DNA from: Oculina patagonica
Lineage: Eukaryota
Direction of reading: 5' to 3'
Length of the DNA: 64,000 nucleotides
Assembly: GCF_052425735.1 (NCBI RefSeq)
Contig: NC_135761.1
Coordinates: 620,001-684,000, forward strand
The notes beneath the pieces are model-generated. The model did no database searches. It was not told the DNA's origin and was given only the letters and a program-made list of their open reading frames with translations. This document shows positions 18,220 to 43,000 of the stretch, piece by piece. Numbering within the stretch: position 1 is the first letter of the stretch; the number at the start of each line of letters is the position of its first letter. A program made the translations under genes and the position numbers.

Positions 18220-19948
18220 AGGATGGTCGAAATTATGAGGTTGTTTTTCCGTTTGAAACGAGTTTAACGGACACTGCAATGTAGTTAACTTTAACTGGGA
18301 ATAAAAGAGATCATTCACAAACTTAATTTCGTATATTTGTTGTTTTCCTCTTCAAATTAGAAGAAATCAAGTCTATTTCTCCTCTTATTTATCGCTGAGC
18401 ATTTTTGCTTTAAAGTATGCGACATAATTTTATATCCCTGAAATACGCATTGGTAATATAGATCCAATAAGCCTTCTTTCTCCACAACCTCATGGCTCCT
18501 GGCTGGGTAGGCTGTTTTCTTCGTTAGTTAGTAGCACATATAGTTTTACTGTTTCATTTACTCTGCATTCACCTTAAAAATACCAATATTACACGAGAAC
18601 CACACGGGATTACATTTGCTATATGTACAATATACAGAATATACTACAGCCGTCTTTTTCTCATGTACGCTATTTCTCATGATATTCGTTCTAGTTAAGC
18701 CTTATACTCAGTGAATTGCGTTTTAGCCACTTGTATCCCCAGCTCTAAAGGCTAGTTACTTGTTTAAACAGTTTTCAGGCAATATTTGCTCTCAAACAGC
18801 AGGCACTGACCCGTTAATTGAAAATTTCATTACAGCTTATAGCCTGACCCGACATTAAGATAAACAGCAATAAAAGTCATAAAAATGTCCAAGGTTGAAT
18901 ATTGAAAAATAATGCTGTTGAGTTCATAAGGTAAAACGTAATGAAATAGGAATAATTAGAAATTATTCCTTAAGAACTTGTTCAAGAAGAAAGATGAAGC
19001 AGCTATAATTCTGTAAGTATTCACACAGATCTTTTGTCCCACCCATATAAAGACGAAACAACATTCACTTTCATTTGGTCCTGTGTGCCTTTTAAATTCC
19101 TTAGCGATAGTAAAAAAAAAGGGCAAACTTGTGTAAATCTTGAATAAAGCACTGCAAAATCTTTAGATTAAGTATATAGATGAACTATTCTTTCTAGACT
19201 AAGCTTCTCAGGGAAATTCCTTCATCAGTCAAATAAAATGCTGCTGCAGGAGATTCAGGCCGAAATCACTTCGATTAAGGAAGCTTCGATTTTATCTCTT
19301 TGTGAATTGATTTGCCATTTACCGCTTGAAGTGCTAATAAAACCTCTGCTATTTTATTGATGTATAATATTTACTATATACTCTTAGTACATCACTAAAT
19401 TGAAAATCACCTCAATGCAGCCAACTCGTCTAGGTACCAAATCTGAACACAACTTCGCCAGCAAATTTGCAATTTAAAAATCCTTACCAAAAATAAAACG
19501 AGTACGATAACCTGTGCAGTATTGTTGCTAAAAGAAATAAGAAAAGGNNNNNNNNNNNNNNNNNNNNNNNNNNNNNNNNNNNNNNNNNNNNNNNNNNNNN
19601 NNNNNNNNNNNNNNNNNNNNNNNNNNNNNNNNNNNNNNNNNNNNNNNNNNNNNNNNNNNNNNNNNNNNNNNNNNNNNNNNNNNNNNGAATTATTTAGTGT
19701 ATTAAGCAGTAAGGTAGGGCGAGGAGACCTCCAGGAAACCACCAGGCGAAAAATTAAAGGAGAGTTTATTCACCTTCCAGGTGCAACTAAACTTTAATTT
19801 AAACTAGAACTTTGATGTCTGAAGCAATGGACAAAATTAAACAACAAACTGCAAAATCTATAAGAGTGCACTTCGAAAACTACTAAAAACAAATAAAATA
19901 CGATTTAATATTTTCTATTCAATTTAGATTCTTGGGATGAGCAAAGTT

Positions 19949-20099: not shown

Positions 20100-23000
20100 A
20101 TGAAGATGCTGTGTTCTATGCTGTTGGTTGTTCTCGCTTCACAAGCGTTCGTCTTTGCTTTCGACGATAATGAGACCATGGCATGGGTGAGTGGTTTTCT
20201 CCTTTTAACGCCAATACTTTTTCAACTTGTATTAATTGTGAAGCGCATTGAGCTTTGTAAATGCACTATATAAGAACCTTCATTCATTTATATTACATAA
20301 GCCTAGCTTTAAAGGGACTGTGTTACCATGATTTAGTGTCACTTGAAAATCCAATGAAGGTGTTAGTATTAATTAATGGGAAATCCACTAAAAGTGACCT
20401 GGCTTTTCTAAAATGTACTGTACTAGTCATGAAAATTGTTAAGAAGTGGTGTGGCTACGGATGGGTAGGAAGAAAGGGACCTAAAACTTGAAAAGTTCGT
20501 GGCCGATGTTTTTAAGTTTGACAGTGTCTCTTGGAAAGAAATAACATAAAAACCATCGGTTACAGTTTATTCACATCTTGGGGAATGAATTCATGCCTTT
20601 CTTTTATTTTTTTAAGGTTATTTTGTGAGTGCACCCCCACAGTTCTAGCATAGTTTACATAAAAAGCTTAGACGACTTCTCGTGATACAGTCCCTTTCAC
20701 TCGAATACCTTAGGATCTACAAATTTCCAAAAACAGCTTGCATAGCCTGCGAATACAGCCGCCTCTCACGCTTCGATCCGCTGCGTTCGGAGAGGAGCGT
20801 GAGAGACGGCTGTATTCGCAGGCTACAGCTTGTCCGACATAACCTTGAAAGGAACATGGATCGAATCTAACTGTAGAACCATTTTCCTTTGGTAGAAATT
20901 TCTGACCAAATACCGCTACATATCTCCTACACGTTCGGGAAATCAAAACATGGAAACAGCCATCAAAAAATTCCAAGAATTCACTGGTCTGCCTTTGACC
21001 GGCAAATTAGACCAGGCCACCATCGCACAAATGAAGGCACCGCGATGTGGAAATCCAGATAATGTATCAAGCCGTGTCAAGAGGTTTAACACTGCTACCC
21101 CATGGAATAATAATCGCTTGACATACTTTGTGCAATATGGGGCAGATTTGCCACGATCCACTCAAGATAGAGTGTTCGCCAGGGCTCTGCAGTACTGGTC
21201 CGATGTATCGGGACTGTCTTTCTCTAGAGCTGCCAGCATAAGAACTGCTGATCTTAAGATCCGGTGAGTAACGACACATTTTTTCAGGGTGGTTTGAGTT
21301 ACTTTCTATGTGCATTGCAGCAGTTAAGGGGGGCCGTGTCACCGTGATTTAGTGCTACTTAAAAATCCAGTGAAGGTGTTGGTATTAATTGGAACTCGAC
21401 TAATTGTGGCCTGGCCTTACTAAAACGTACTGTACTAGTCAAAAAAATTGTTAAAAAGTGATGTGGCTATGGATGGATAGGAAGAAAGTGGCCTACAGTT
21501 TGAAGAAGTCGGGACGAAGTTTTCAAGTTTGACAGTGATTTTTGGAAGAAAATCACATAAAAACTATTGAATACGGTTTATTTACATCTTGGAGAATGGA
21601 TTTATGCCTTTCTTATGTTTTTAGAAGGTTAATTTTGTTGATCAGTCATCATACCCTGACAGTTCTAGCATAGTTTACACACAAAAAAACTTAGCTAAAC
21701 TTAGTCTTCTCGTGACGCTGTCCCTTTATCGTTCAAGAACGACAGGACACTTATCAAACAACTTTGTTATTATAAAAAAGGTACTGAGTTAGAGGTGTTG
21801 CTTTTTACGTCCAAGTAGGACTCCTGCAATGCTAGGCTTCGCACCTCACTATAAGAGATCAGTTTATAGGGCCTTACTCTCGAGAGAAAAACTTGCGATC
21901 AGCTTTGTAAGTGATCATACGAATGTGGATCATTTTCAGTTTGTGCAGCAATGCTTCGATTAAAATTCGTTGCCAATTTGCATTAAGTATGGTCCTGCAG
22001 TAGATTTCTTTAAGAAGAGCCTAAAGAAGTATCTTTTTTAAAAATCTTTTTCTTTTTCAAAAATCTGGAATGGTGTCAGTGATGACATTAAGCTTCTGTC
22101 ACTTAAACAATTTAAGAAAAAGTACAAATCAAGCATTATTGCAAGTTATTAACGGAACATTTTATTAACTCTAGTTTTCAATTCCTCTCTTCTGTTAGTT
22201 AATCTGTCCATATACTTTATTTCCCATCTTTTTTTTCCACTAAATTTTTTAAGCCTACTTAGATTATTTTTGTGTGTTTGTGTGTGTGTAGTTGTTATCT
22301 TAATCTTTAGTACACCTGACCCTTTTATAAATTGTTGTAATAAACACTGAGTATCGCTGCCCAATCTTGTTAGCCAATGGTGGTTATTTTGGGCAGCCAT
22401 GCACTTTACTTTATTTTATTTTTATTCTTATATGTATTGCAAATTTAATTGAATTAATGGGTGCGAATAAGTTGTTGTTGTTGTTTAAGGAAGCTTTCTA
22501 TTGACCATTTATTTTAGTAAGTGTAGAAAGTATTATTTAAAATGATAATAATTAGTTTTTAAAAAATAGTTTGATAGGTTTTAGAGGGGCCTAGAAGGGT
22601 AAAATCAAAACTGGAGTTTGGGCAAATTTTCGTTGGGAAAATGGGATTTTGGACACTGAGACCGGAAATCACAACCAAAACAATGGGACTGGGATTTGGG
22701 CAAAATTTGACCAAGATGCAGAAAAAAATAGTTACTTTAAAATTCAGAACATTTTAATGCTCTTTAACTCTTGTCTTTCTTTGCGCAGCTTTGGAAGGAG
22801 AAGGCACAGGTGCGAGGGGCGTTTCGACGGACCGAGCGGGGAACTAGCACACGCCTTCTTCCCCGAAGATGGCCGCATACACTTTGATGAAGCTGAAACA
22901 TTCACCGACGGAACACCCCGGGGCATAAACCTTCTGTGGGTTGCTACTCACGAATTCGGTCATGCTTTGGGAATCGACCATTCTGATGTCAGAAATGCTG

Positions 23001-26000
23001 TCATGTACCCATACTACGAAGGATATAGGGCAGACTTCGATCTCCATCAGGACGATATTGATGCGATTCAGTCTTTGTACGGTAAGTCATAATAATAAAC
23101 ATAACAGCCTCGTCCGCAGGCAGGCCTCGTCCTGTGATTGTGCACGGTTCGCTTGGCGTTGTGGGACTGACGTGCACGGTTGGCTGATGGCGTTCTGGGC
23201 CTGATGCGGAGGCGCCTTTTCTCCCTAACTCCTCAACCCCCGCGCTCCCTGTTTCTCCCATCCCCAATCCTCTCCCAACGTCCGAAGCCAAGATCGGCGC
23301 CCGTCAAGGGGACGAATGTGCCCAGATAACACGTGCTTTGAAGGCATAACAAGTCAACAGTGACAACAATGGAGTGACAGGCCTGCACAACTCCCATCCA
23401 CGTGTAATAGCCAGTTAAAGCTTTGCTCTTACGAGTATATCCTTTTAGGGATCTGCCCCTTTTGTACGAGACAATAGGGGGATCTTTGAATATTCATCTA
23501 AGCAATGGTTGTTGTTGAATTAAATGCCAATGCTGCATAAGTATTTGCTTCAAGTTAGGCACTGATGGGTGATGTTGTGTAGGAAGATTCGCGTGTCTGG
23601 GTTACGTTTCTGTTGTAGGGCAGGTTTTCTCTCCTCAAATATAAATTCTTCGAGGGTTGTAGTAGCCACGTGTAATAGCTGGCCATTGCACGTGGATGGG
23701 AGTTGTGCAGGCCTGTCACTCCATTGTTATTGCGGCCAACCCAAAGTCCCGAAATTATTGTCAGTGTAATACTATCAGTAAAACCTTTATTTGGCGGCGG
23801 GCACCTCTGTTACCACCTTTCGGCCATCTCAATGAGGATTTTGTCTATTCGTAGTCATTGGCCTAATCTCGTACCCAGATGTCTACTTACCACGGTAGCA
23901 CTACGAGGGTTGAGAAGATCTGGGTACGAGATTAAGTTTGGCCTTGTTTTTCATTTTCCAATGACAGATGAGAGTCCGAAATAGCAAGTGGGACGAGGTT
24001 GGACTATTGAAAACATTCAAACACACGCCTAATTGTCTTGACATGATTCCTTAAAGCTAAGTGATGATGTTTTAATTTCCTGGCAATAAAGTGATGTTTG
24101 TACCACATCTTGTGCTTATTTCTGATGAACCGGCCCTATTAAGCGGTCACTTACCATTTCCCCAATTCGATTGTATTTGATCATTAGTAAAGTCGATCAT
24201 TCAATGGCAACAAGGTTAAATAAAATTGCCTTGTGAAAAAAATTAATTAAAAGCCCTTCTATCCTTTTGGCATGATATTGAAACTCTCGATAAAAGCGTA
24301 GGCTCGATTTCCACCGCTCTCACAGGACGAAAACGCACGTTTCCGTATTTCTGAAACATGACGGAAACATAGAACTCTATGTTTCCGTCACGTTTACGTG
24401 CTGCGGAAACGTGAAAATCCAAGTCTCTCTGATAATATCACGTTTCCGTCATGTTTCCGCAACGGAAATGCGAGTTTACGTTTCCGTCACATTTCCATTA
24501 GCGGATAGCCGCTGTTGTTTGTTTCCGTCACATTTACGCTAGCGGATTTCTGCTGTTGTTTGTTTCCGTCAAATTTACGTTAGCGGATTTCTGCCGTTTG
24601 TTTCCGTCACATTTACGTTAGCGGATTTCTGCTGTTGTCTGTTTCCGTCAAATTTACGTTAGCGGATTTCTGCTGTTTGTTTTTGTTATTTTTCTGAAGA
24701 CGGATCTCCAATTTGTTTCTATCAACCTTAACTTTTTGAGTAAATTAAAGCATATTTGTGACACAAGTTTAGTAAGAGAAATGAAATCTCAATCATGACA
24801 TGTTATCATCGCGTAAAAGGAACGTAACAGGGCTTTCTCAGTGCGTTTTGTTGTGATGATTGATAAGCATATCCCATTAATAGCTATTTATCACAATACA
24901 GTGCAGCCTGCTAGAACATCACTGCAAACATGCAAATTGTAATCAAGTTTTTTTTATTAATCCATCATTTGAGCTGGTTGGGTCATTTGATGCAGTTATT
25001 ATTTGAGTCAATTGGGTTATTTGCACTGGTTTGATCACTTTAGCCAATTGTGTCATTTGAGCCGGTTGGGTCATTTGAGACAGTTTGGTCATTTGAGTCA
25101 GATGGGTTGTTTGCACTGGTTGGAGTGGTTGACCCAGTTGAGTCACTTGAACCAATTGTGTCATTTAAGCCGGTTGGGTCATTTGTGACGTTTTGGTCAT
25201 TTGGGTTCGATGGGTTGTTTGTACCGGTTTGATCACTTGAAGCAGTTGTGTTATTTGGGCCGGTTGGGTCATTTAAAACAGTTTGGTCATTTGTGACGGT
25301 TTGGTCATTTGAGTCTGATAGGTTGTTTGTACCGGTTTGATCACTTGAAGCAGTTGTGTCATTTGAGCCAATTGTGTCATTTGAGCCGGTTGGTTGATTT
25401 GAGCTGGTTGGGTCATTTAAAACGGTTTGATCACTTGAGCCCAATGGGTCAATTGATGCAGTTGGATCACTTGACCCAACAGTATCATTTGAGTCGGTTG
25501 GGCTATTTGAGACAGTTTGGTCATTTGAGTCAGATGGGTTGTTTGCACCGGTTTGATCAATTGAGCCAGTAGGGTCAAGTGACACAGTTGGGTGACTCGA
25601 GCCAATTGTGTCATTGAGCCGGTTGGGCCATTTGAGACAGTTTGGTCATTTGAGTCAGATGGGTTGTTTGCACCGGTTTGATCAATTGAGCCAGTAGGGT
25701 CAAGTGACGCAGTTGGGTCACTCGAGCCAATTGTGTCATTGAGCCGGTTGGGCCATTTGAGATGGTTTCTTCATTTGAGTCAGATGGGTTGTTTGCACTG
25801 GTTTGATCAATTGAGCCAGTAGGGCCAAGTGATGCAGTTGGGTTACTCGAGCCAATTGTGTCATTGAGTGGATTAGGCCATTTGAGACAGTTTGGTCATT
25901 TGAGTCAGATGGGTTGTTCGCACCGGTTTGAACCTGAGCCAGTTGGGTCAAGTCATGTAGTTGGGTCATTTGAGCCAGTTGTCCTATTTGAGCTGGTTGG

Positions 26001-29000
26001 GTCATTTGAGTTGGTTGAGTCATTTGAGATGGTTTGTCATTTGAGTCAGATGGGTTGTTCGCACCGGTTTGAACCCGAGCCAGTTGGGTCAAGTCATGTA
26101 GTTGGGTCACATGAGCCAATTGTGTCATTGGAGCCAGTTGGGTCATTTGAGTTGGTTGAGTCATTTGAGATGGTTTGGTCATTTGAGTCCGATGGGTTGT
26201 TTGCACCAGTTTGATCACTTTAGCAAGATGGGTCAATTGATGCAATTGGATCACTTGTCCCAATAGTATCATTTGAGTCGGTTGGGCTATTTGAGACAGT
26301 TTGGTCATTTGAGTCAGATGGGTTGTTTGTACCGGTTTGATCAATTGAGCCAGTAGGGTCAAGTGACACAGTTGGGTCACTCGAGCCAATTGTGTCATTG
26401 AGCCGGTTGGGCCATTTGAGATGGTTTCTTCATTTGAGTCAGATGGGTTGTTTGCACCGGTTTGATCACTTGAGCCCGATGGGTCAATTGATGCAGTTGG
26501 ATCACTTGACCCAAAAGTATCTTTTAAGTCGGTTGGGCCATTTGAGACAGTTTGGTCATTTCAGTCCGACGGGTTGTTTGCACCGGTTTGATCAATTGAG
26601 CCAGTAGGGCCAAGTGACGCAGTTGGGTTTCTTGAGCCAATTGTGTCATTGAGCCGGTTGGGCCATTTGAGATGGTTTCTTCATTTGAGTCAGATGGGTT
26701 GTTTGCACCGGGTTGATCACTTGAGCCCAATGGGTCAATTGATGCAGTTGGATCACTTGAGCCAATTGTGTCATTGAGCTGGTTGGGCCATTTAATACAG
26801 GGGGTTTGGTCATTTGAGTCAGATGCATTGTTTGCACCGGTTTGATCAATTGAGCCAGTAGGGTCAAGTGACGCAGTTGGGCCACACGAGCCAATTGTGT
26901 CATTGAGCTGGTTAGGCCATTTGAGACAGTTTGGTCATTTGAGTCAGATGGGTTGTTCGCACCGGTTTGAACCCGAGCCAGTTCGGTCAAGTCATGTAGT
27001 TGGGTCACATGAGCCAATTGTGTCATTTGAGCTGGTCGGGTCATTTGACGCGGTTCAGTTATTTGACTCAGATAAGTTGTTTGCACCAGTTTGATCAAAT
27101 GAGCAGTTGGATCATTTGAGTAGTTTGAGTCATTTGAGCCAGTTAGGACATTAGTTGGAACAGGGTCATTTGACCTGGTTGGGTCATTTGATGCATGTCA
27201 GTCATTTGAGCCAGTTACCGCAAATAATTGAGTTGGTTGGAGCATTAGCCTGCGAATACAGCCGCCTCTCATTCACGTGCCGCAACAAACGAAACGGAAA
27301 GAGCTCTTCGTTGCGGGACGTGAATGAGAGGCGGCTGTATTTGCAGGCTATTGGAGCATTTGAACTATTTTGGTCGATTGAGGTGGTTTGGTCATTTGAG
27401 CAGGTTAACTTGAGGGGGCTGTTTCAATTGAGTCTGTTGGGTGTTTGTTTTAAGCAGTTTGGTTTGTTCAAAGAGGTTAGGTTGTTTAGTTGGTTGTTTA
27501 AGCCAATTTGTCTTGGTCATTTGAGCTAGATGGATTTTTAAAGCAGTTGAGTCATCTAAGGTAACTGTCTTATTTGTAGAAAAGGAGTATCTATGTAACA
27601 TTCAGGATAGTGTCATTTGGGGAGTACAGTGTAACCTCGGTTTAAGTAAGGGCAAAGTAAGGTTTCGTTAAATCAGGGTTCTTCTCAATATATTTCACTA
27701 TTATTGGGACAAAACCATAGTTCTTTAAATCGATGACTTTATATACGGGTTCTTTAAATCGAGGTTCTACTGTAGCATCTTCTTATAAATACTAATGACA
27801 GATGTCTCAAATAGAGTTGCACTTCATACCAATGTAATTTCAATCCAAATAAATGTACATGAGTCCTGTAACATTATAAGACCAAAGTCTACATAAATGC
27901 TTATGTACATTGCAGCCTCAAAGTGTGACCACATTCACATAGTTCAGGATACACAGCATATTTTTCCAGTTTAAAAGCAAAGATAAAATGTGAATTAACC
28001 GATTGCGGACACTTTTTGTGGCTCCTTGCTTTAACTAATGTAGCTATTAAGTGGCACGTTCCTGTAAGCAAATATAAAATGTCAACTTTCTCTGTCAGGA
28101 TGTACTGTATTCTTTCACTAGATGTATCTCCTTACAGTCACTATACAGCTGTAAATAGTAATTAAAGCAAGGTTCTCCTGATCTTGGTTATCAAAGCCGC
28201 TGTAGTTCCTCTGTTCTCCAAAACTACCCGGAAAGATCTTGTAGCAATGAGAGCAACCTCTCTTTGCACTATGGCCAAGGAATCCGCAAAGTTTCCGTGC
28301 TGCTGGAATATCAGATGCAAAACACAACACAGCTGCATGAATTTCCACTGCAGTAGATGGGCTTCGATAAGTGTTCACCTTGACTCCTTTCCAGAGAGCA
28401 TTCAATTCATCGACAGCTGGCTCAAGAAAATGATTTAGGGATTTATGTCACTTACATAGTTCTTGTATTGTCAGACTAGGACAAAATAAACAAGCCATAT
28501 CAAAATGATCCATGTGTGCTGCTGACGTGTTCGTGGTGGTAAAGGTTGCAGCAGTTTTACATCTTCAGAGTGAAGCAATTCCTCAACATCACTTAAGTCC
28601 GAGTCGACATAATCTGTACCACCATCTTCATGGTGGCTACTATCCTCATCAGAAAGGCTGTCAGACTCTTCTTGCTCCTGAAAGAAAAGAAGTGTACTTG
28701 TTATTATTTTACTGAAGATACATTTAGAGGAAACTCATTCAGAGGATTCTCAAGCAACCTCCTGCAGCAGTATAAGAAATAGTGAATAAAAGAAATAGTG
28801 CAGTGTGCTGCATTTTAAAGGGCCTTAGTTTAAATTTATTACAGAACCTTTTAGTAAAGCACTAAATCCTTACAAACTGGATGGTATAGTTAGCCATTAA
28901 TTCTGAACTTGTCTAAAAAAGATCCTAGTCACACCCAGTTTTTTTTAAAACAAAAATTTAGAATCTGAGAGACTGGGAGACGTCTCATGTTAAAAACAAT

Positions 29001-32000
29001 TTGGGGCAACAGTACACGATGGGTAACTGTTATAATCATACAATGTAACTTTATGACCCATGAGGATTTTTAGATTTCCCCCACCCTAGTAAATTAGATT
29101 GGGGTATTATTACAACTTAAAAATATAAAAGGGGTACGTAAGAGACTCATATCTTACAATTTAAATTGTTCAAGCTGAACAGGAATTACCGTGCTACTTG
29201 TAAAACTGTGAACACTTACATGTAAGAGCCAATGCTACCAACAGTCAGACATAAGACAGCAAGAGTCACTCATATTCTTACCACAGATGGGCCTTAAATA
29301 TGAAACAAACCACTGTATACTATGTTTGGCTGAATATCAATTTGTTTTGAATCAAGAAAATTGATTACTGCAAAAATTGAAATTTCCTCCGAGTTTGCTA
29401 TAAGTAGCACAGGGACATTATGAAACAATCAAAAAAAATTTCTGCCAAGACCTATGCCCAGCACTACATGTATGTAAACACATGTTCTTTGTGACCGTTA
29501 TTTTCTCTACAGCTAAGGACTCCCTGTGTACCAGAATGCATTGTGTGCTTTGACTTGAGTTTGGTATGATATGAAACCTTTGTTTTGAAGTGTTTTGCCG
29601 TAGCCTGTTCCAATCTCCGTTAATCTGAGTAATCAAGCCAAATGACCTCAGAAGCAACATTTTTTACCTGTTTCTACTGTTAAATACTATTTAAGACGGC
29701 CAAATGCCCCAAATCTTTTTTATTTTCAAGGGCTTTTCTTCAGCGACAGAATCAAACAAAAACAAACGCTCCAATGCATAACCGTTTACAATGTACCTAT
29801 ATAACAAAGTCTTTAGTATAATGAACGATATTCTTCAGCCCGGCCAAAGTTACAGTAAAGTTTATGGAACAGTACTTCAAGATAACAAACCTCGATATAA
29901 CGAATCAAATCCATCCTAAAAAACCAAACCAATCTAAATATTTTGAAAATTCAAAAATCCTTATCAAAAATGCCCTCTTTATAATAATTTCCTCCAAAAA
30001 TAAACCCACCAAAAAGTCACTTGAACAAGTTAATTTACACACTTGGCCACAACTTGTTTAAAATCACAAATAATTTCCAGGGATGTCGCTAAGGGCCGGC
30101 TGGCAGCTAATTTCACCGGCTGAAAGAGAACTTAAATCCGGCTGAAATTTCAATGAAAACACAGACTAAGGTAAACTTTTAGATCTGCCAAGGCCAGAAA
30201 AGCCAGCTGGGTTTGTTGAAGAGCTGGCTTAGTGTTTTCTTAGCTACAACTCTGAATTTCTAATTTCACATGACAGTTGAAAAAGACATCTCCGATTCCT
30301 TAAAGATCCTAATTTAATGATAACTATATTTTATTCGGGGGACAAAGGTCATCCGTTCAGAACTGCACATCCGTGCGAGCGGCTTGAGTAAGCCGTTTAG
30401 GAAAAGTAAATGCGATCTGTTGGTCTCGTTGACGCGTGCCAAAAGATCAAAAATTTATCTCACAAAAAAAGTTTATAAATGTTCACGGCGCATCATATAA
30501 TCTTTCATAACACATAACTTCTGGGTATAATGCGTTCGAATATATTGTAAGCCATTTCGCCATTCATCGCTATGCATTCGGAATAAATTGTAAGCCGTTC
30601 CGCTGTTCATCGCTCTGCGTTCACAAATTTTCGTAAGCGGTTCAGTTGTTCATGACCATGCATTCAGAATAAATTATAAGCTGTTCAGCCGGGCAGTTTC
30701 ACACGTTCCACACGGCTTTATGAGCCATGCGTTACCCGTTCCATAGCCGAACATTTTACCCGTTCAACAGAAAGCCGATAGTGTACGTTTTCACGTGAGA
30801 CGTCACAAATAATTTTTTAATTTTTTTTAATTTTTTTTTTTTAGTTTTTAATTTTTTTAAATTTTTTTTTTCTTTTTTTTCAATTATTGTATTTGTTTAC
30901 TTATACGTTATTTGTGTGTATTTTTTCTATTGAAATGAATAAAAAAAAAAAAAAACACAGAGGGGGCTTACCTGAATCACTCCCAGAAAGATCCTGTGCA
31001 TGTAAACATGTAGCTGGCACCAATGATAGGTCCAAGTTCCCATCTACATTAAAATACACATTGGTGATTATCATAGGATTTACTGTACATATAATGTAGA
31101 TTATACCCAGCATATCACATCGAACAAAACCAAACAAATTTTTCATCAAACTCAATCGAACAAATTTGGAAGGCATCGAACGATTAAATTCAATGTTGTT
31201 CGGTCATCGAACGAAATCGGACAACTATTCTTTTATGAGTTTGATTTCCAAACCAAATCGAATGAAATCGAAATTAAGCGTTCAATTTAATTCGATTAAT
31301 GTAAATTGAACTTGTAGCTTAAATTTAAAATAAAGAAATTGGAACCTAATGAGCGAGTAAAAAGTTATTGATTATTCCTTACATGGTTTTGGAATAAGTG
31401 ATGGGACACGGTATCGTATAATCACAGCTCTAAAAATTAGTATGGAAATAAAGGAAACATAAATTTAGATGGCTGGATCGACTGATGCATTTATAATCCC
31501 CATTGATAATCAAATGACGGAAAACTGAACATTCGATTTTGCTTGATTCAGATTATATTGTGATACGTCATAAGCCACTCGCTTAGGTATCGTTCGACGA
31601 CAGAACTAAGTTGAACCTCATCGAACTTTATCGAACGTTCGATTTGGTTTGATTTGCATTTATTTTTTGTAAGTTCGATTTCGTTCGATGACCGAACAAC
31701 ATCAAATTTAATCGTTCGATTTACGTTCGATTGAGTTTGAAAACCAAACATTTGATGTGATACGCCAGGATTATAAAGCCTGTCTTCACATAATTAACTG
31801 TGGGTTGAAAAATTAATGTTACCAAATTAAATGTTTTTCCTGGTCAGAAATAATTTGTCTCTTGACCAGTCATTTGTTTGAGCCCTGGATAATCAAGAAC
31901 CTTGAGCACTGGTTGTAAATAAACAGCAAACGTGTGAAGTCCAAAGGGATGGGCAGTTAAATACTGTTGTTTCAAACTTTCTTGTCAACCTAAAAATATG

Positions 32001-35000
32001 GTTGTTCAAGCCTTCACTTTTCAGACCTTAATTACAAATTCAAATGAGTTTGATCACTGCACAAGGTTAAATTATAAAAAAAAGATAACGCGTAAAGTTT
32101 ACCTTCGCTTTCACTTGAGCTCGATCCAGGAACGTCTTTAGGTACAGAATGAGATGTAGAGGAGTTGATATATCTTTTTTTCCACAGTTTTCACTGATTT
32201 ACACTTGCATCGAATTACAGTCTTCGGTGTTCGTGGTATTGTGAGTTGCTAAGAAGCTGATGGCAATGACCACATCGTTGTCTGCATCTTGTTCGCCTCT
32301 TTTGACGACTCGACTCGCCATGCATTTCTTTCCTCCTCATCCTATGCTCGTTTAATGCGTTGATTTAAAATTATACTTAAATAAAAGATCAAAATCTCCT
32401 CGAAAAAGCACGATTGATCACTAAAATCACACGAAAATTTATCCACATCAAAAGGATCGAAAGGTGACAAGTGCGCAGATGCAGTTGCGCATGGTGATGC
32501 GGGCTCAAGTTCGGTCAGCAAAGACTCGCGTCGCGTCACTTGCGAGGCGGGAAATTTGTAATTAGCAAAGCGAAGATTCAACAACGAAAGCGAGTGTCAG
32601 CACCTTTACATCTGTTCTATTTCGACTGTTTGGCAAGTGCTATGGAATCGCCGAGAGAAGAGAGATAGAAGACCTGATCGAGAAACCCCAAGAGCTGCTC
32701 CAGAGAATCAGGCTACTCCAGAAGATATCGATCTTGTGAGAAAGTTACTGACCGAAGTTGCGGAAATTCGCAAAGAAAATCAACAACTGAAAAGTGAAGT
32801 GTCAAATCTTAAGACAAAAACAAGAAGGCGACTATTCCAGAGATCAAAAGACAGCGATAGTGAGTGCTCGGTGAGTAAGATTATTTTACTATTATACTTC
32901 TAAACTGAATACTAACCGAATATCGAGACGCTCGAATGGCGGTTTTAATAATGAGTCTTTGGGTGATGTGTGACATTCCCCATGTATTAATGAACGTTGT
33001 CAATGAAGGTTTAGCTTTAACTTTTGCGCTCCGAATATCATTCACTGCAAACTAAACATGTAACTAAGTCATCTACGCAAAAGTGCGTGCATATATTTGC
33101 TTAACAGTATCATAATGATTAAATCCAAGAGTACTTATGAGTCTATCATTCATTCACATACACTTGAATTCATTTGGAGTCTTTGTGCAAATTCATGGTT
33201 TTGTTTAGCAAAGGAAAGGTTTGAGAGAAGAAACTAGAACGGTTTTCAAAAAGCACATGCTTTTTTCCGTTAACTGGCGTTACATTTTCCACTGAAGAAG
33301 GGGCAGTAGCCCCGAAACGTCTGGGAAAAACTTTCAATCATCGGCGCATTTAACATTTACATTTTAACATTTCTATGAACTAACTATATGCGCTACACAG
33401 CCACACGAAAATTTAATATATATGCTAACAGCCGAGAGAAACGCGCGCAGGCTGATTTAAACACGACTTCTATGCAACTTATTCCCACTAACCAGGTTAT
33501 AAAATCGATTTGTTTCGTTAATTCAAACTTAACAAAAATTGGATTATACATGTATGTTACTCTGTAATATATGTTTATTCGCAAGCAGTGAACAATACAG
33601 TAATCACCCAAAAATTACGTTCGCTCGGTGCTTCCAGTTTGAGTCGATGTATTCAAACTTAACAAAAATTGGATTATACATGTATGTTACTCTGTAATAT
33701 ATGTTCATTCGCAAGCAGTGAACAATACAGTAATCACCCAAAAATTACGTTCGCTCGGTGCTTCCAGTTTGAGTCGATGTATGTATATTAATTGTGAAGG
33801 TGTGCTTTAAAAAATTTAAAATGTCAATGTGAGTTAGTTTGACACTGTTTTTTTTTCTGTTATTATAAAACTACAAGAATGCTGTCAGGAAAGTGTGGCA
33901 GGAACTGACAAGGCAAGAGGATCAGGAAAACCAGCTTGAATACAATTTGAACACCAGGTGAAATATGTAATAGATTGGTTCTTTTTAGTCTGCATTTACG
34001 TCGTCTGGACGCGGTTTACCGGCGTTTTGAGGAAAATGACATAACTGTGAATAATCGGCTAAGTAATCGACTTTAGACCATGACGTTCACTGTCTGAAGG
34101 GCTATAAAGCGCTGCATAATAACAGTTTTTCTATCTGCAAAATGCGTTTCGTTGACAATTTGTAGCCTGTGTACAGCCGTCCCGCTCCCCTCAAAAAAAT
34201 CGGGGAGGGCACGTCGTTCCCTCTCCGATTTTTTTGAGGGGAGCGGGACGGCTGTACACAGGGTAACAATTTGTTGAATAATAAAACAGATATCCTGCTC
34301 AATTATGCGGAATATCGTCTGGGGGTATCAGGCGCGATTCGCAGAATAATTGTTTAATATCCAACTCGCGCTCATGGAATAATTGTTAAGTACACAACAG
34401 TTATCCTGCGATCTACTTACATGTATTGCGCGTCAGCCAAGTCATGTGGGGGGAAGAGGAGAGCGCTTACCGTAACTTTTAGTTTTTTTTGTTGCGAGTT
34501 GTGATGGGTTCGTTGTATTATTTGTTTGATTGAGATGAGATTAATACGGTGGCCAAGAAGGGACAAGTTCACAACGCTTCTTCTTGAAAATGCAGTGTTG
34601 TTCTGTAGAAATCTAACTGTTATTTTTAGAACTGAATTTGCGAACAACACTGCATTTTCAAGAAGAAGCGTTGTCCCTTCTGGGCCACCGTAGATTTAAC
34701 TGCTTCAATTCAGCAGTTAATTATGCGTAATGGGTTTGTATAGTCTTTTATTCATTACCGATCATTACCTCTATCGTAGGTTTAATAGTCCATCAAACCA
34801 GGCCATGGCAAAGAAAGTTGTCAAAGAAGTGCAGTCAGTGTATGGCAAGAAAAAATGGAAAAAGGCTATCATAAGAGGTAAATTTTCTCGTAAATGTTGT
34901 ATGTACATTACCAATTTTTTTTGTCTTTTTGATTACTCGTTTTAACAATATTATTCTCAGTTAAACAGTTTTAAAGGGCCTCAATAAATTTGGAATGATG

Positions 35001-37523
35001 TAGACTTAAATTTCGTTTTAAGTTTGTTTAATTGTTATCGCTCTAGATCTGTACATGTAGTACATGTATTTTGGGCTTGTAATTGGCGAAACGCCGTAAG
35101 TAGCCTCCCTTATTAATAAATATTCTGTTGCATTTTAGTTGCCGTTCAACAACACTGGAGATCCTTACGTGACGATGCAACCAGAAAAACAAATAGCAAG
35201 TTCGAGGAACACAGACGAAAAGTAAAGCGGAACAATCGTTTAAAGAGAGTAAGTATAAGAAACATACATTGTTGCTCCTTGATGATTAACTGGAGAGTTT
35301 CAGCTTTAGCCTTTACTTCTCTCAAACGATTGGCATTAACTTTTGTAAGACTGGTTTTCACTGGCCATAAACATAAGCGCATAAGAAGAGCAAACACTGT
35401 CCGATTAGACATAAACAAAAACCAAAAGAAAACGAAACTATTCGTTCTTCTTGTGCTTTTCGTATCCCTTCGGGGCTTATTATTCCTGTGCATGTTGAGA
35501 ACAGGATGATAAGAAAGAGTGTGTTCAATCTTCTTATGCGCTCTTGTGCTTGTACTTAACTCGGTGAGAATCAGCCTTTTAATAAAGTTCTAAACGACAA
35601 TATTTTTAGTCAAACAGAAAGTTAAAGTTCTTTTTTTGATGCGTTTTCCCTTTCTATCTTTTAGAAACTATTCAGGCGCCTCCAAATTCTACAGAAACGC
35701 ACTCTGTCAGAAAATGACAAAGACAAGGCGAAAGAAATCCTATCTTCCCCGAATGCGATTGACTTTATGTCATCAGAGGAAAGTGAAATCGATGATCCAG
35801 ATTCGACGAGTGGTCCAAAGCAAAGAAAAACAAGAAAACTGACGTGGGAACGCACCAAGCTCAGGAACATTAAATCAAAACTAGACGAGGCTCATTTAAA
35901 TGGCCTGAGCGAGAAACAACGTCGCACAAGTGCCCGTGTAAACAGAACCGAGACGGCATCTGTACGGCCCTGCCCGACCAATGCCCCTAGTTGGGCAGTA
36001 CGCAATGATTGATAGCCACTGGACTGAGTGTATTGACTGTGTCATAACCACTCATACAAATTTTTTAGCTTCAACGAACAGTGTGGAACCTTGAAACGTT
36101 CATAATCAATATACATTTTAATAAAACATATATCATTTTTCTTTATTCTTGGGGACAATCAGGTTGTTTCCATTTCCAGATTTGCCAGCAAGTTATGTTA
36201 TGATGCGTAAGACTTTTTCAAAAACAAGATCAGTAAAATAACGAACGCTACTTTTTCAACAACAAAAATGATTATAGGAAAGGAAAATAAATAAAGTTTC
36301 GGTAGAAACTATCGGCGTCCGCAACTGCTATCACACAATTACGCGTCCAGTATTGGGCCTGATTACGTCAACGGAAACAAGAAAAAATAACATGTTTCCG
36401 GAACGTTACCTGGTATTTCCGTCACTTTTAGGCCTGTTTACGTCGACGGAAACCAGCAAAAATCATATTTCCGGAACGTTATCCCGTGTTTCCGCAAACT
36501 TTAGGTCTGTATACGTCGACGGAAACATGAGAAAAACATATTTCCGGAACGTTATCGCGTGTATCCGCAAACTTTAGGTCTGTATACGTCGACGGAAACA
36601 TGAAAAAAACATATTTCCGGAACGTTATCGCGTGTATCCGCAAACTTTAGGTCTGTATACGTCGACGGAAACATGAAAAAAACATATCTCCGGAACGTTA
36701 TCGCGTGTATCCGCAAAGGTAACCATGAGGTTCCGCTTGCGGAAACCGTTGTTTCCTTCAGCTGAAACATGACGGAAACATGTATAAAATTGGTCCGGTT
36801 CCGCTGTGTCCGCAGCAACGGAAACACGAGTAAACGCCACAAAACCGCAGACGGAAACACGAGTTGTCCGTCATGTTTCCGCAACGGTGACACATGTTTC
36901 CGCAACGTTTCCGTTTACGGATTCTTGGTATTTCGTCCTGTGCTCGAGTCCGTTCTTTGTTCCTCCCCGAGAAAAGAGTCAAAAGTCCCTGAACTGAACG
37001 ATGTCAATAATGAGACACACAACAACCTGTGGAGTCGCCAAATAATAAAAACAACTTTAAGCATGGGTATTTTGCAGCAAAGTGCGAAGCACAAGACAGA
37101 GCGTTCTACATTACTGTGAGATTAGGCGTTCTTTTCTTCGCGACGGGAAGAAAGAGAGAAAAAAAAACGAGAAAAAAAAAAGAACGCCGTATCGCAGGTT
37201 GTATTGAGAAGGGAGGTACAGAATCTGGAGGAGGAAGAAATTTTGGCTAAAAAGATAGGGAGGAGGGAGAAATTTTAGCTCCAAAAATAGGGAGGAGGAA
37301 GAAATGATGCAAAAAGTAGGGATGAGTTACCCTGCTGTCCCTCCCCCCGCTGAATTTTACAGGACAGTTAAACTGTCTGTCTCGGCTCGTGATTCACGTG
37401 TCCTTTCGACACCCGCTTCAACGTCTGTTTTGCAGGATAAAATTAATAATTAAATTTTCCCAGCCTTGAACATTTTATGACTTTCTTTTTATTGCTTTTT
37501 ATTTTTTTGCAGGCTCATCTTAA
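20100..37523 (+). CDS. MMP-A, minimal matrix metalloproteinase (M10A); coding exons 20100-20186, 20896-21263, 22789-23081, 37513-37523; 3' UTR exon from 38116
   Basis: Signal peptide, PRCGNPD cysteine switch, RVKR furin site, [12 protein letters not shown] zinc site, AVMYP Met-turn. The last coding exon (G-S-S-stop) is assigned by paralogy with MMP-B and lies beyond the 12.6-kb transposon. Confidence 0.88.
20313..20695. mobile_element. AGGGACTGTG-TIR MITE (TTAA target) in MMP-A intron 1; related copies at 21328-21725, 40221-40574, 42277-42655
   Basis: TTAA-AGGGACTGTG...CAGTCCCT termini. The 42277 copy has TTAA on both sides. MMP-B has an empty single TTAA (41413-41416) where MMP-A has the 21328 copy. 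Confidence 0.8.
20743..20825. mobile_element. Short palindromic TAGCCTG...CAGGCTA element; related copies at 27246-27350, 34163-34265, 49896-50056
   Basis: Hairpin structure with target duplications: TTGGAGCAT (27246 copy), ACAATTTG (34163 copy), ATCGTTTT (49896 copy), partial CAGCTTG (this copy, absent in MMP-B). Confidence 0.8.
24338..24705. repeat. Left subterminal repeat array of the transposon
   Basis: About 40-bp tandem units GTTTCCGTCA(C/A)ATTTACGTTAGCGGATTTCTGC plus dispersed TTTCCG motifs. Confidence 0.9.
24962..27240. repeat. Complex 18-bp-period minisatellite with higher-order units, inside the transposon
   Basis: Consensus near TCATTTGAGCCAGTTGGG. The minus strand reads SNDPTG-type hexapeptides in broken frames. 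It fades into degenerate copies to about 27620. Confidence 0.92.
28172..32340 (-). pseudogene. Decayed EnSpm/Tnp2-type transposase (remnant exons about 32340/32325-32103, 31043-30972, 28677-28172)
   Basis: FLEPAVDELNALWKG...SDIPAARKLCGFLGHSAKRGCSHC is the typical CMC transposase core. N-terminal RCGHCHQLLSNSQYHEHRRL*F and WLVYFVLV*QYKNYVSD contain stops. Apparent deletion junction near 28440; C-terminal half missing. Confidence 0.82.
32642..36012 (+). CDS. Transposon second gene (TnpA-like accessory, C14orf93-like C-terminus); exons 32642-32870, 33878-33957, 34780-34877, 35139-35248, 35665-36012; one frameshift just after the ATG
   Basis: Four GT-AG introns join in phase (0,2,1,0) with no stops, about 290 aa: coiled coil, basic helix (HRRKVKRNNRLKRKLFRR), DFMSSEES...RKLTWER...LDE...RPCPTNAPSWAV. 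AATAAA at 36120-36125. Confidence 0.8.
33285..33328 (+). ncRNA. Minimal type I hammerhead ribozyme (Penelope/retrozyme type)
   Basis: TTTTCCA-CTGAAGAA-GGGGC(AGTA)GCCCC-GAAAC-GTC-TGGGAAA: 7-bp stem I (one G.U pair), core CUGAAGA, perfect 5-bp stem II, GAAA, palindromic ACGT instead of stem III, GUC cleavage triplet ending at 33321. Confidence 0.75.
33521..33780 (+). repeat. Near-perfect 130-bp tandem duplication in intron 1 of the transposon second gene
   Basis: 33521-33650 repeated at 33651-33780 with one visible mismatch. Confidence 0.9.
36365..36920. repeat. Right subterminal repeat array of the transposon
   Basis: About five copies of a roughly 70-bp unit (TACGTCGACGGAAACATG...CCGGAACGTTATCGCGTGTATCCGCAAACTTTAGGTCTG) plus dispersed GGAAAC motifs, inverted relative to the left array. 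Confidence 0.9.
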
Positions 37524-40062
37524 AATAGCAATTTAGGAGATGAGGAAAGGGAGGAGGAGGAGGATGTAAGTTGCGTAATTTCCGGTCCATAACTGACTTC
37601 CGGTTCTTAAATTCTAAATTTGATACAAAACAAAACTCTAAATTCACTTAATCAGATTAAGATTACTTTTGGAAAGAAACGAAGATAATTCCTGAGAATA
37701 TAAATAACATACAGTTGGAACTGTTATTTGTATTTTTTTAAGCATTTCAACAACTTAACCGAGGTTTCAGAACTAAAACGATGACATTTGTTAATATTTC
37801 AGTACGATAGGTTGTGTAGATAAAACGCAAAATTTTTGAACGACCGAAAATTATCCAAATGAAGACGCTTAGTTCGGCATTGAAAATTTTCCAAAATTTC
37901 AAATCCGAATATTTGTTGAATGGAAAGAGGTCATGATTTTGCTCTGCCAATCGTTTAATAAGCCTAAAAACTTTGCAATGATCTCCAATCCTCCTCTGAT
38001 AAACAAATATTTGTCACTATTTTTCTCCGTACTAGTCGGAGAAAATGAAATAGGGGTTGTCACAGCGAGCAACGGTTTATATCGACTGATGAATATTTTA
38101 TTATATTTATTTTAGATTTGCTGTCACAGAGGGAGAAGAAATTTGATTTATTTAATGTAACCCAAGAATAATGAAAAAAAGTGTTACTAAAGAGATTGAA
38201 AATTAAGATTTTGTCCAGCACTTTATTCTGCCTCAGTAGTAATGGTTGTTTTCGTCTCTAAAAAAATAAATTTAAATACTCCTCTTATTACTCACTGTGT
38301 AGTTTTGCTTTAAAGAACGCGACACAAATTTACATCCCCGAACTATGCATTGGCAAAACATCCAATACGCATTCTTTCTCCACAACCCATCCCAAAATGA
38401 AGCAAAGTATAATTATTTTTATTGTAGATTTATTTTTTTTTATATTTTTAAAGCCGGAAATAATTTATTTGCCTCTTTTTTGCAGACTGATTTCTTTGGC
38501 AGTGAGTAGCGCACAGTTTTACTATTCCGTTCACTTGTCCCCAATATTACACGAGAATCACACAGTCTTTAATTTTCTCATGTTATTCTTCCCAGTCAAG
38601 CGTTGTACTTAACTAATTGAATTCGTTTTAGCCACTTGTATCCCAGTTCTAAAGGCTAGTTGCTTGTTTAAACAGTTTTCAGGCAATATTTGCTTTTAAG
38701 CAACAGGCATTGACCCGTTAATTGAATATTTCATTACAGCTTATAGCTTGACGCGACATTTCAATCAAAAGCAATAAAAAGAAAGTCATAAAATGTCCAA
38801 GGCTGGATGTTGAAAAAATAATGCTGCTAAGTTCATCAAGTAAAACATAAATAGATAAACAAAATTAGAAATAATTCTTCAAGAACTTGTTCAAGAAGAA
38901 AGGTGAAGCAGCTATACTTAGGTCAGTATTTACACAGATCTTTTCTCCTTCTCATATAAAGACGAAACAACGTTCAATTTCGTTCGGTCCTGTATGCCTT
39001 TCAAATTTCTTAGCGATAGTAAACAAGGGCAAACTTGTGTAAATCTTGAATAAAGCACTGCAAAATATTTAGATTAAGGATTTAGACTAAAACGTCTTAG
39101 GGAAATTCCTTCCTCAGTCGAATGAGACGCACCACCCATAAATAATGCCGTTGCAGAAGATTCAGGCCGAATTCACTTCTATAAAGGAAGCTTCGATTTA
39201 ATCACTTTATTTATAAATTGATTTGCCATTTACCGCTCGAAGTGCTAATAAAACCTTTGCTATTTTATTGATGTATAAATATTTACTATATACTCTTAGT
39301 ACATCACTAAATTGAAAATCACCTCAATGCAGCCAACTCATCTAGGTACCAAATCTGAACACAACTTCGCCAGCAAATTTGCAATTTATTAATCCTTCCA
39401 AAAATTAAACGAGCACGAATACCTGTACGGTAGTGTTGCTAAAGGATATTAGAAAAAGATTTTGCCGTCCCTCTCCTCTCGAAAAAATCGGGGAAAGGAA
39501 CATCAGTGTGTTACACCATCGTTAATCGTGTTCCATTCCGGGTGGGTTTCCCGGAATACGTTCCTTTCCCCGTTTTTCGAGGGGTGAGGGACGGCTGTAC
39601 ACAGGCTGTTTATCAATCATCATCATCATCGTTTATTTGCCACTTCAGAAAAAAATTTTTAATTCAAATTAAACAGTAAGGTAGGGCGAGGAGACCTCCA
39701 GAAAACCACCAGGCTTACAGGAGAGTTTATTCACCTTCCAGATGCAACTAAATTTTAATTTAAACTATAACTTTGATGTCTGAAGCAATGGACAAAATTA
39801 AACAACAAACTGCAACATCTATAGAAGCGCACTGCGAAAACTACTACTGAATAACAAATAAAATACGATTTAATATTTTCTATTCAATTAAAATTCTTGG
39901 GATGAGCAAAGATCAGCTGTCAGGTGTAAAATGTGTTTCCAAACAAAATTAAAAAACAGATAAACTGTAGAACAGTGGGAGTGTACACAACGAGTTATAA
40001 AAGAAGTGAGATTCAAGAATTCTTCACTCAAATCCAATCTAGTAATTTCGTTGGTTGCTAAC

Positions 40063-43000
40063 ATGAAGATGCTGTGTTCTGTGCTGTTGGCTGTTCTCGC
40101 TTCACAAGCGTTCGTCTTTGCTTTCGACGATAATGAGACCATGGCTTGGGTGAGTAACTTCCCATCTTTCAACGCCAGCACTTTTTTAACTTGTGTTTAT
40201 CGACATAAGCCTAGCTTTAAAGGGACTGTGTCACGGATTTAAGCCAAATTTAGGGATCGGAAATGACCATCAAATTCTGTGAAATATAAAATTAACATCT
40301 TAAAACAGTAAAGGAACATTTCAATAACTCAGCAAATACAAAATAAGATACCAATGGCCAAAGCGACGAAGATTGAAACGGATTGAGATATGGGTTTTTG
40401 AAATATTGTTGGGCTGAATAGTTTTAAATTTAAAATATGACGCCCGCGGGAGACACATTTGGGTGCAAAGATAAGGTTTTACCATTTAGATCCATAGAAG
40501 TAATTTCTTTGCAAACAGCAAGTATTTGGCAAAGCTAAATAAAATAAACTTAACTCAGCCGTGACACAGTCCCTTTTATTAACGAAATACAAAAACCCTC
40601 AACTTGTCGCGCAACATTGTTGCATTGCCAGTTGAACGAGTTGTTGCCTGTATTTCTACCGCGCGCTCAACTTGTCTCGCAACAAATTTCGGTATTGCAA
40701 GTTGAAAAAAATTGTTTCAAAAAGTAGAACTCGGTTCTACTTTGTGCAACATGTTGCTGCAATTTGCACCACTAAAATTTGTTGCGAGACAAGTTGAGCG
40801 CGCGGTAGAAATACGGGCAACAACTCGTTCAACTGGCAATGCAACAATGTTGCGCGACAAGCTGAGGGTTTTTGTATCTCGTATTTCGCCGCCTTAAGTC
40901 GAACACCTTAGGATTAACAGATTTTTAATAACAGCTTGAACACTGATTGAGTCTAACTGTAGCACATTATTTCCTTCGGTAGAAATTTCTGACCAAATAC
41001 CGCTACATTTCTCCTACACGATCGGGAAATAATAACATGGAAACAGCCATCAAAAAATTCCAAGACTTCACTGGTCTGCCTGTGACCGGAAAATTAGACC
41101 AGGCTACCATCGCACAAATGAAGGCACCGCGATGTGGAAATCCGGATAATGCCGTATCAAGCCGCGTCAAGAGGTTTAACACTGCTACCCCATGGAATAA
41201 AAACCGCTTGACGTACTTCGTGTCATTTGGAGCAGATTTGCCGCGAGCTGTTCAAGCCAGAGTGTTCGCCAGGGCTCTGAAGTACTGGGCTGATGTATCG
41301 GGATTGTCTTTCTCTAGAGTTCGCAGCAAAAGAACTGCTGATCTTAAGATCCGGTGAGTATTAACAAATTTTTAGCAAGGTTTCTAGTTACTTTATATGC
41401 GCATCGCAGCAGTTAACGTTTGAGAACGACAGGGCATTTTCTTACGGCTTTGTTATTATAAAAAGGTTACTGAATTTAAGGTTCTTCATTTTACGTATAC
41501 GCACCTCATTATAAGTTATTTCATTGAAAAAATGGGATTTGGGACACTGAGACCAGAAATCGAAGCCAAAATAATGGGACTGACTCAGAGATTTGGGCAA
41601 AAATTGGGCAATCATTAGGCTGGGAAATGGGATTTGGGCAAAATTTGATCTGAAAATGGGATTAAAGTTAGACCCCACATTCATNNNNNNNNNNNNNNNN
41701 NNNNNNNNNNNNNNNNNNNNNNNNNNNNNNNNNNNNNNNNNNNNNNNNNNNNNNNNNNNNNNNNNNNNNNNNNNNNNNNNNNNNNNNNNNNNNNNNNNNN
41801 NNNNNNNNNNNNNNNNNNNTACAGCTTTCGTAAACAAGACACATACATGCAAAAAAAAATTAGCTACTTTAAATTCAGGTCATTTTAATGCTCTTTAACT
41901 CTTGTCGTGTCTACTTGTTTGCACAGCTTTGGAACACGGCGGCACAAGTGCGAGGATAGTTTCGACGGACCGAGCGGAGTGCTAGCACACGCCTTCTTCC
42001 CTGATGATGGCCGCATACACTTTGATGAAGCAGAAACATTCACTGTTAGAACATCCAACGGAATAAACCTTTTGTGGGTTGCTGTGCACGAATTCGGTCA
42101 CGCACTGGGCCTCGACCATTCTGATGTCAGAAATGCTGTCATGTACCCGTACTACGAAGGATATGTGCCAAACTTCGATCTCCGTCAGGACGACATTGAT
42201 GCAATTCAGTCCTTGTACGGTGAGTTTAACATGACACAATATTGCATTTTGGCAGGTACAGTCAAACCCCTATTAAAGGGACTGTGTCATGGATTTTAAC
42301 AGATTTTTGAAAAGCCAAAATTTATATTTGGGTCGTAGGAAACTTAAAAATAATGGTCCATTTTTATTAACAATTGCCTTTTAAGAGCACTGAAACTGAT
42401 TAAAAGCGTGATTGGCTACGAATGGCTCGGATGGAAATGGATTGCAATTTGGAAACGTTAGCCAACATTTTCAAGTTGTTTCCGCGCGCCTTCAAAAAAA
42501 TCGATATTTATAGCCGAAGTTTGATTTTTATCCCCAAATAACGGTTATATCTTCAATTAAATGTTCAAAAATGTTTTTCATGGGTAAAGTTGCCTACCAC
42601 TTATTTCAGAACAGTTTAGACCAAAAAACTGCGAAATCCCTGTGACATAGTCCCTTTAAGCGGGCAACCCCTTTGTCAAAGTCCCGAAATTATTGCCAGT
42701 GTAATACTGTCAATAAAACCCTTATTGGGCGAGCACCTCTGTTACCACCTTTCGGACGTTTCGATGAGGATTTTTTTTATTCGTATTCTGGCCTTGTTTT
42801 CAACAACAACCTAATGACAGACGAGAGTCCAAAATAGCAATTGACGACTGATGAAAACGTTCAAGCACACGCCTAATCCTCTTGACGTGATTTCTTAAGC
42901 TAAGTGGTGATGTTTTAATTTCCTGTCAATATAGTGATGTTTATACCACACCTTGTGCTAGTTTCAGATGAGCCGGCCCTATTAAGCGGCTATCCTCTAT

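Follow-up and report, generated by a model that had tools for sequence, protein, structure and literature searches.

What kind of element lies at positions 24321-36942 of a 64-kb stretch of the genome of the coral Oculina patagonica, can it still move, and what does the second of its two genes do? The window analysed here (C4:620001-684000; positions without a prefix refer to it) is part of a 529-Mb assembly, in which all genome searches described below were made. A sequence-only reading had described the segment, which lies downstream of an exon of a matrix-metalloproteinase (MMP) gene, as a fully delimited transposon of the CMC/EnSpm type carrying two genes in a head-to-head arrangement. Our analysis indicates that it is very probably a non-autonomous copy, defective in both genes, of a young EnSpm/CACTA family of O. 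patagonica. The copy in the window is an ordinary dead transposon; the divergent two-gene plan of its family, with a conserved and unnamed accessory protein, is apparently an undescribed variant of EnSpm.

Ends of the element and target duplication of the family

The element is bounded by a pair of 12-bp terminal inverted repeats (TIRs) without any mismatch, CACAGGACGAAA at 24321-24332 on the plus strand and its reverse complement at 36931-36942 on the minus strand. At the left junction CT (24319-24320) is followed by CACAGGACGAAA at 24321, and at the right junction TTTCGTCCTGTG, ending at 36942, is followed by CT (36943-36944). The expectation that these ends would recur was borne out by the genome search: it located the first 380 bp of the element at more than 20 sites and its last 243 bp at 19, mostly with 96-99% identity and with identical TIRs, and about 15-18 copies of the family lie on other chromosomes. 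The right TIR is also present on contigs of other corals. A chance inverted repeat was considered as the origin of the ends and rejected.

Both ends carry arrays of a short motif. The 9-mer GACGGAAAC/GTTTCCGTC occurs 14 times in the window compared to 0.28 expected, none of 100 shuffles reached 14, and all occurrences are confined to the ends of the element (at most 330 bp from the left end or at most 500 bp from the right end). Eight of them (24360-24649) lie in the left subterminal region (24333-24682), seven on the minus strand and one on the plus strand, and six (36445-36858) in the right subterminal region (36364-36930), all reading GACGGAAAC on the plus strand. The motifs are partly contained in tandem arrays, a 41-bp unit repeated 5 times at 24480-24682 and a 73-bp unit repeated 4.8 times at 36364-36717, and the positions 40, 61, 122 and 160 from the left end are kept in diverged lineages. 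The perfect TIRs and mirrored subterminal arrays noticed from the sequence are therefore genuine features of the ends, with all 14 motifs lying there.

A 3-bp target duplication and 5'-CAC...GTG-3' termini are used as criteria for EnSpm/CACTA elements (PMC12730594). The element in the window and at least 13 copies have CAC...GTG termini, with CACAGGACGAAA at one end and its reverse complement at the other, and both ends have subterminal arrays of the short 9-mer, inverted with respect to each other. A minus-strand open frame (28121-28447) matches the Pfam family Transposase_21 (PF02992) with an E-value of 2e-7, above the curated cut-off (30.8 bits versus 28.6), and intact relatives match with E-values of 1e-15 to 1e-17. 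The assignment to the CMC/EnSpm type, made earlier from the sequence, is upheld by the joint presence of this transposase domain, the termini and the subterminal repeats.

The target duplication was assessed on 14 paired copies, 2.2-20 kb long, and three one-ended copies; both flanks were readable for 13 pairs. The 3-bp flanks were identical in eight pairs (GGG, TTG, TAA, CGT, AAA, CAC, AAA and AAA), differed by one mismatch in two and did not match in three, including the window copy. Since eight of 13 pairs are perfect at 3 bp and four of the eight (TTG, TAA, CGT and CAC) are incompatible with a 2-bp reading, the family makes 3-bp duplications. The window copy has TCT on its left side and CTC on its right, so that two of the three bases expected of a duplication agree; this agreement over CT may be fortuitous, or one junction may have slipped by 1 bp. 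The CT described earlier is indeed found on both sides of the element, but the duplication made by the family is 3 bp and not 2 bp long. Could the element instead be a Mirage-like CMC transposon making 2-bp duplications? CT is present at both ends of the window copy, and some animal CACTA-like elements do duplicate 2 bp, e.g. SmTRC1 (PMC1636069); however, a 2-bp agreement is expected by chance once in 16, and the four perfect 3-bp pairs that fail at 2 bp refute a Mirage-like identity at the level of the family, which leaves this possibility very improbable.

Transposase gene

In the window copy, the transposase gene is a minus-strand relic. What remains of exon 1 (32128-32340; start codon 32340-32338) carries a CxxC...HxxxH zinc-finger-like motif and is interrupted by in-frame stops at codons 42 and 50. 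Two fragments of exon 4 abut at a deletion junction (28445/28446): an acidic N-terminal part corresponding to residues ~1-76 of a 789-residue reference (28446-28704), and residues 315-403 with the motifs DIPAARK and CSHC and the Transposase_21 match (28178-28444). A further deletion joins residue ~403 directly to a remnant of the 3' end of the gene and of the sequence downstream (27913-28180). The window transposase is thereby without residues 77-314 and everything beyond 403, and both losses are common to a subfamily of copies described below. The lost residues are presumed to include the first catalytic D and the catalytic E.

Three relatives retain long open frames with Transposase_21: copy A (C8 at 21.45 Mb; 789 amino acids), copy B (C2 at 26.41 Mb; 890 amino acids) and copy C (C2 at 20.28 Mb; 890 amino acids). 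No other transposase of the family was found in the whole-genome search, which did return several EnSpm families at a greater distance (46% and about 40% identity). In copy B (C2:26407470-26422550), four exons bordered by GT-AG join into a complete and uninterrupted transposase of 999 amino acids, in which NVDWFQPF (383), DIPAARK (477), CSHC (496-499) and HLHLHLKE (709-716) follow one another. This order fits the arrangement D, D, C(2)C, H(3)H, E, with C(2)C as CSHC and H(3)H within HLHLHLKE; the catalytic residues are inferred from the order of the motifs. The transposase frame of one copy is 100% identical to the NCBI protein ACROYT_G028667, a match by which the species is recognised as the stony coral O. 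patagonica, and animal homologues of the transposase number in the hundreds.

Several observations concern the history of these copies. In copy A, an insertion of ~1.6 kb (C8:21464169-21465761) severs the last ~130 transposase codons, and the NCBI model ACROYT_G028667 (896 amino acids) ends within the inserted sequence. Between copies A and B, identity is 90-99% over the part that starts with transposase exon 1, spans the second gene and reaches the right end, with a synonymous divergence (dS) of 0.08 in the second gene, but their large transposase exon is only ~76% identical and saturated at synonymous sites. Likewise, the left 380 bp of the window copy are 98% identical to copy A, and the interiors are 75-94% identical. 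The mosaic structure of copies A and B points to recombination between lineages. At least two other EnSpm families of the genome have open transposase frames of 866-933 amino acids (C1:45131292-45133880, C5:28717973-28720558, C13:35975450-35977984, C5:8502571-8505054, C9:27734199-27736745 and C5:11158544-11161069).

Head-to-head layout and structure of the second gene

The transposase reads towards the left end and the second gene towards the right end. In the window copy their start codons, at 32340 (minus strand) and 32642 (plus strand), are 302 bp apart, in agreement with the earlier estimate of about 300 bp. The corresponding distances, in the coordinates of each copy, are 332 bp in copy A (15229 and 15561), 333 bp in copy B (9801 and 10135) and 322 bp in copy C (13080 and 13402). 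As the same divergent arrangement is found in the three relatives, the layout is a property of the family, and the co-occurrence of both genes between the same ends, on which the sequence-only reading depended, is verified. Judging from this geometry, the central spacer of ~300-330 bp (301 bp at 32341-32641 in the window) would act as a bidirectional promoter.

An exon model of the second gene was built from blocks conserved between diverged lineages and from canonical GT-AG splice sites. It comprises five plus-strand exons: exon 1 (32642-32870), which begins with the ATG at 32642 and encodes an acidic N-terminus and a leucine-zipper-like coiled coil; exons 2 (33878-33957), 3 (34780-34877) and 4 (35139-35248), each a conserved block with its splice sites; and exon 5 (35665-36012), which encodes a conserved C-terminal domain and ends with the stop codon at 36010-36012. 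The same model gives an open protein of 297 amino acids in copies A and B and of 285 amino acids in copy C, so that the product is a basic coiled-coil protein of 285-297 amino acids. The window copy has lost 8 bp near 32663, after codon 7, which creates a TAG at codon 9 (32666-32668). The deletion is private to this copy, being missing from seven sister copies, and the sequence downstream of it is open in the shifted frame. The spliced plus-strand gene proposed earlier is thus present with its five exons, ATG and splice sites, but the intactness that the proposal implied does not hold. Between lineages, the ratio of nonsynonymous to synonymous substitution rates (dN/dS) is 0.12-0.18 for the second gene and 0.07-0.08 for the transposase exon, values that indicate purifying selection on the second gene.

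Metagenome contigs of other corals provide a separate observation on the exon model. On two of them (L030:1320-1808 and L033:407-936) exons 3, 4 and 5 are fused exactly at the predicted junctions, and on L033 the right terminal repeat is present as well, at 1823. Because this repeat lies on the exon-fused contig, the fusion is an intron loss inside a transposon and not a cDNA, and since the loss is exact, a spliced mRNA with those junctions must once have existed.

A deletion subfamily and its mobilisation in trans

The two transposase deletions of the window copy are found with identical breakpoints in at least five other copies (C3, C12, C2, C1 and C10), four of which have their own perfect 3-bp duplications. 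The presence of identical deletions at several insertion sites implies that the deletions are older than the spread of these copies, and hence that transposase was supplied in trans. The earlier suggestion that the element is mobilisable in trans accords with this, as the deletion-bearing copies lie on different chromosomes and most have duplications of their own. Over 1.35 kb, the pairwise distance within the subfamily is 0.7-3.6% (mean 2.1%).

No copy of the subfamily has an intact second gene, the lesions differ copy by copy, and a genome-wide search with exon 5 revealed no further copies. As each copy bears a different lesion, the gene was open in the founder and decayed later, privately and neutrally. 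The founder of the subfamily had therefore already lost transposase residues 77-314 and those beyond 403 while its second gene was still open. From such a founder, the subfamily spread to at least a dozen sites, presumably moved in trans by the transposase of the three transposase-bearing relatives with the same ends, before the private lesions of the second gene accumulated in each copy. That the window copy is itself autonomous, or makes a working second protein, is ruled out for practical purposes: the second gene retains its splice sites and four undamaged exons out of five, but most of the transposase is deleted, its exon 1 contains stops, and the second gene stops at codon 9 with the next in-frame methionine only in exon 3.

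Relatives of the second gene

Database searches were made with exon 5 and with natural database proteins as queries, the joined exons being used for frames and substitution rates only. Exon 5 matches hypothetical proteins of Acropora, Porites, Stylophora, Montipora and Oculina, and a profile search of 1.84 billion representatives returned 326 matches. Distant homologues of 250-580 amino acids are found in sea stars (Acanthaster planci and Patiria miniata), anemones (Actinia tenebrosa and Actinostola), bivalves (Potamilus and Sinanodonta) and a flatworm (Macrostomum), and align to residues ~30-295 of the coral protein with 26-34% identity. A second word search, using a profile of full-length homologues, gave 4 matches and was dominated by low-complexity words.

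The association of the second gene with a transposase extends beyond the family. When the 10 kb upstream of six EnSpm transposases from other families were searched with the second-protein profile, four matched (E-values of 2e-24 to 3e-5); these transposases are ~40% identical to that of the family, and in all four cases the matched sequence is homologous to the last exon and oriented as a divergent gene would be. On metagenome contigs of other corals, the same right end lies 0.9-1 kb beyond exon 5, and GACGGAAAC is located 171 bp from this end. This end and the 9-mer at 171 bp are conserved where the coral protein is only 63-72% identical, and one contig carries a transposase exon upstream, on the strand opposite to the second gene. 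In the starfish Acanthaster planci, a second-gene homologue (LOC110985748) and a transposase homologue (LOC110985747) are each on a contig of 758,555 bp and are most likely neighbours.

Role of the second protein

The second protein has no match in Pfam. Searches at E-values up to 10 found no family, either for the exons taken singly or for ten full-length homologues; as TnpA (Transposase_24) is among the families not matched, the proposal that the accessory protein differs from plant TnpA is sustained. A sequence profile search of the PDB returned nothing, and a protein atlas searched with exon 5 gave no usable match. Weak matches of the bZIP/HALZ type (E-values of ~0.002-0.006) are limited to the zipper-like helix that exon 1 encodes. 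A possible relationship to C14orf93-type proteins gained no support: the Pfam searches at E-values up to 10 gave no shared family, none of the named matches is called C14orf93, and the literature searched yielded nothing to connect C14orf93 with transposons. An AlphaFold model of a 302-residue homologue, built from 36 aligned sequences, is of high confidence, with a mean predicted local distance difference test score (pLDDT) of 90 and a predicted template modelling score (pTM) of 0.64, and consists of a long N-terminal helix and a helical domain followed by a beta hairpin and further helices. With this model, Foldseek found nothing at E-values of 0.001 or below, and the best VIA-align score (Z 7.0) is within the stated noise range for helical models.

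The protein may nevertheless be a required accessory factor of transposition. As a dimer it would bind the subterminal 9-mers and help to assemble both ends of the element, like maize TnpA. By this analogy, such an end-pairing role is a serious possibility, though it falls clearly short of an even chance, and a regulatory or anti-silencing role is about as likely. The wider proposition, that the protein is the animal counterpart of TnpA, an ancient partner of EnSpm in cnidarians, echinoderms, molluscs and flatworms, with a novel fold and a zipper dimer reading the GACGGAAAC arrays, in an ancestrally divergent layout with a central bidirectional promoter, remains tentative and somewhat unlikely to be right as a whole.

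Several points weigh against the overall reading of the element and its two genes. The flanks of the window copy show no clean 3-bp duplication; promoter direction, start sites and splicing in O. patagonica are read from the sequence; the second protein matches no DNA-binding family or solved fold, its link with the 9-mers being one of analogy; the adjacency of the two genes in Acanthaster is deduced from gene numbering and contig size, not from coordinates; and two EnSpm families with a transposase 46% identical showed no homologue of the second gene within 10 kb upstream.

The strongest alternative is that the protein is a factor encoded by the element with a role other than end binding: it might act against silencing by the host, regulate the element's transcription, or serve to bring the transposase into the nucleus or to stabilise it. 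The lack of a recognisable DNA-binding domain or fold is compatible with it, a coiled coil and basic stretches suit many nuclear functions, and the CxxC...HxxxH motif in the N-terminal part of the transposase could itself read the ends. Maize TnpA also regulates its promoter (PMC1636069). Only the analogy with En/Spm, and the consideration that the arrays of 9-mers need a reader, favour end binding over this alternative, which we regard as well within reach, if not quite probable. Alternatively, the second gene could be a passenger that one transposon lineage captured from a host and that has no role in transposition. Transposons do capture host genes, no known family of transposon proteins is matched, and the gene was not found upstream of the two families mentioned above. 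Against a passenger, its position and divergent orientation are constant in three lineages and in four ~40%-identical families; it probably adjoins a transposase homologue in starfish; its dN/dS between lineages points to selection through the element; and in other corals it lies at a fixed distance from a conserved right end. A passenger is improbable.

Comparison with known elements

The coral family shares with maize En/Spm and plant CACTA elements the Transposase_21 domain, CAC...GTG termini, a 3-bp duplication, inverted subterminal repeats, a second element-encoded protein, and abundant internally deleted derivatives moved in trans. In plant En/Spm, one transcription unit starting from one end is alternatively spliced to give TnpA and TnpD (PMC1636069). 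In contrast, the coral family has two genes on opposite strands that diverge from the centre, and its second protein is encoded with its own start on the strand opposite to the transposase and not by alternative splicing of the same unit. The terminal pentamer is CACAG in the coral family and not CACTA.

Among animals, EnSpm/CMC transposases of amphioxus, acorn worm, oyster, starfish and a gorgonian match the coral transposase with 41-47% identity over more than 85% of its length and have the same Pfam domain; they are annotated as lone hypothetical genes. In the literature searched, we found no description of the ends or of a partner gene of these transposases, nor of a second gene in animal EnSpm elements. 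Another animal element, SmTRC1 of Schistosoma mansoni, likewise has Transposase_21 and encodes additional proteins that are not related to TnpA, but it differs from the coral family in its CCC termini, its 2-bp duplications and its accessory open reading frames, which lie on the same strand and are expressed through alternative splicing; its authors noted that these accessory proteins have no similarity to proteins of other animal elements (PMC1636069).

The family provides a fully delimited animal EnSpm element for which the ends, the target duplication, the cis motifs and the two genes are established. It shows a second protein accompanying the transposase in a fixed divergent layout from corals to probably starfish, and offers a candidate protein and a candidate motif for the question of what does the job of TnpA in animal CACTA elements. 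For annotation, hundreds of invertebrate "hypothetical proteins" become recognisable as one of two transposon genes. A separately encoded partner has a parallel in principle in PIF/Harbinger elements, in which a small accessory protein is needed for transposition besides the transposase, but there the transposase belongs to an unrelated superfamily, the accessory protein is of the Myb/SANT type and the target duplications are TWA.

Host locus and minor features of the element

The first MMP gene of the window has its zinc-site exon 1.2 kb upstream of the element. The next paralogous MMP unit is collinear across the insertion point, with 213 bp there versus 13.1 kb here; as a stand-in for an empty site it was of no use, the insertion point itself failing to align. 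No coding exon of the first MMP gene was found beyond the element, and the placement within an MMP intron proposed by the sequence-only reading could not be substantiated. The insertion site may equally be an intron, a 3' region or an intergenic spacer of the MMP array. This tandem array contains at least four MMP genes on the plus strand (20852-24277 together with 37393-38238, 40938-44778, ~48100-49000 and ~55450), with cysteine-switch exons at 21040, 41127 and 48147 and zinc-site exons at 22949, 42087, 48953 and 55457.

Within the element, a minisatellite of 2.2 kb (24965-27216), with an 18-bp unit and a higher-order period of 125/251 bp, separates the left end from the 3' end of the transposase gene. 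It occupies this place in every lineage of the family and is variable in length (0.7 to 4.6 kb across copies), with several frames open on both strands; it has been annotated as part of a hypothetical protein (P0144) in which it is fused to exons 4-5 of the second gene. Outside the element, three runs of N are present at 19548-19686 (139 bases), 41685-41819 (135 bases) and 55821-56157 (337 bases). Near-perfect palindromes or inverted repeats were observed in non-coding parts of the element at 34157-34271, 27243-27353, 31175-31720 and 34571-34674, with arms of 57, 47, 48 and 33 nt, respectively, and a complementarity of 91-100%; they may be small nested insertions of a foldback type or resembling miniature inverted-repeat transposable elements.

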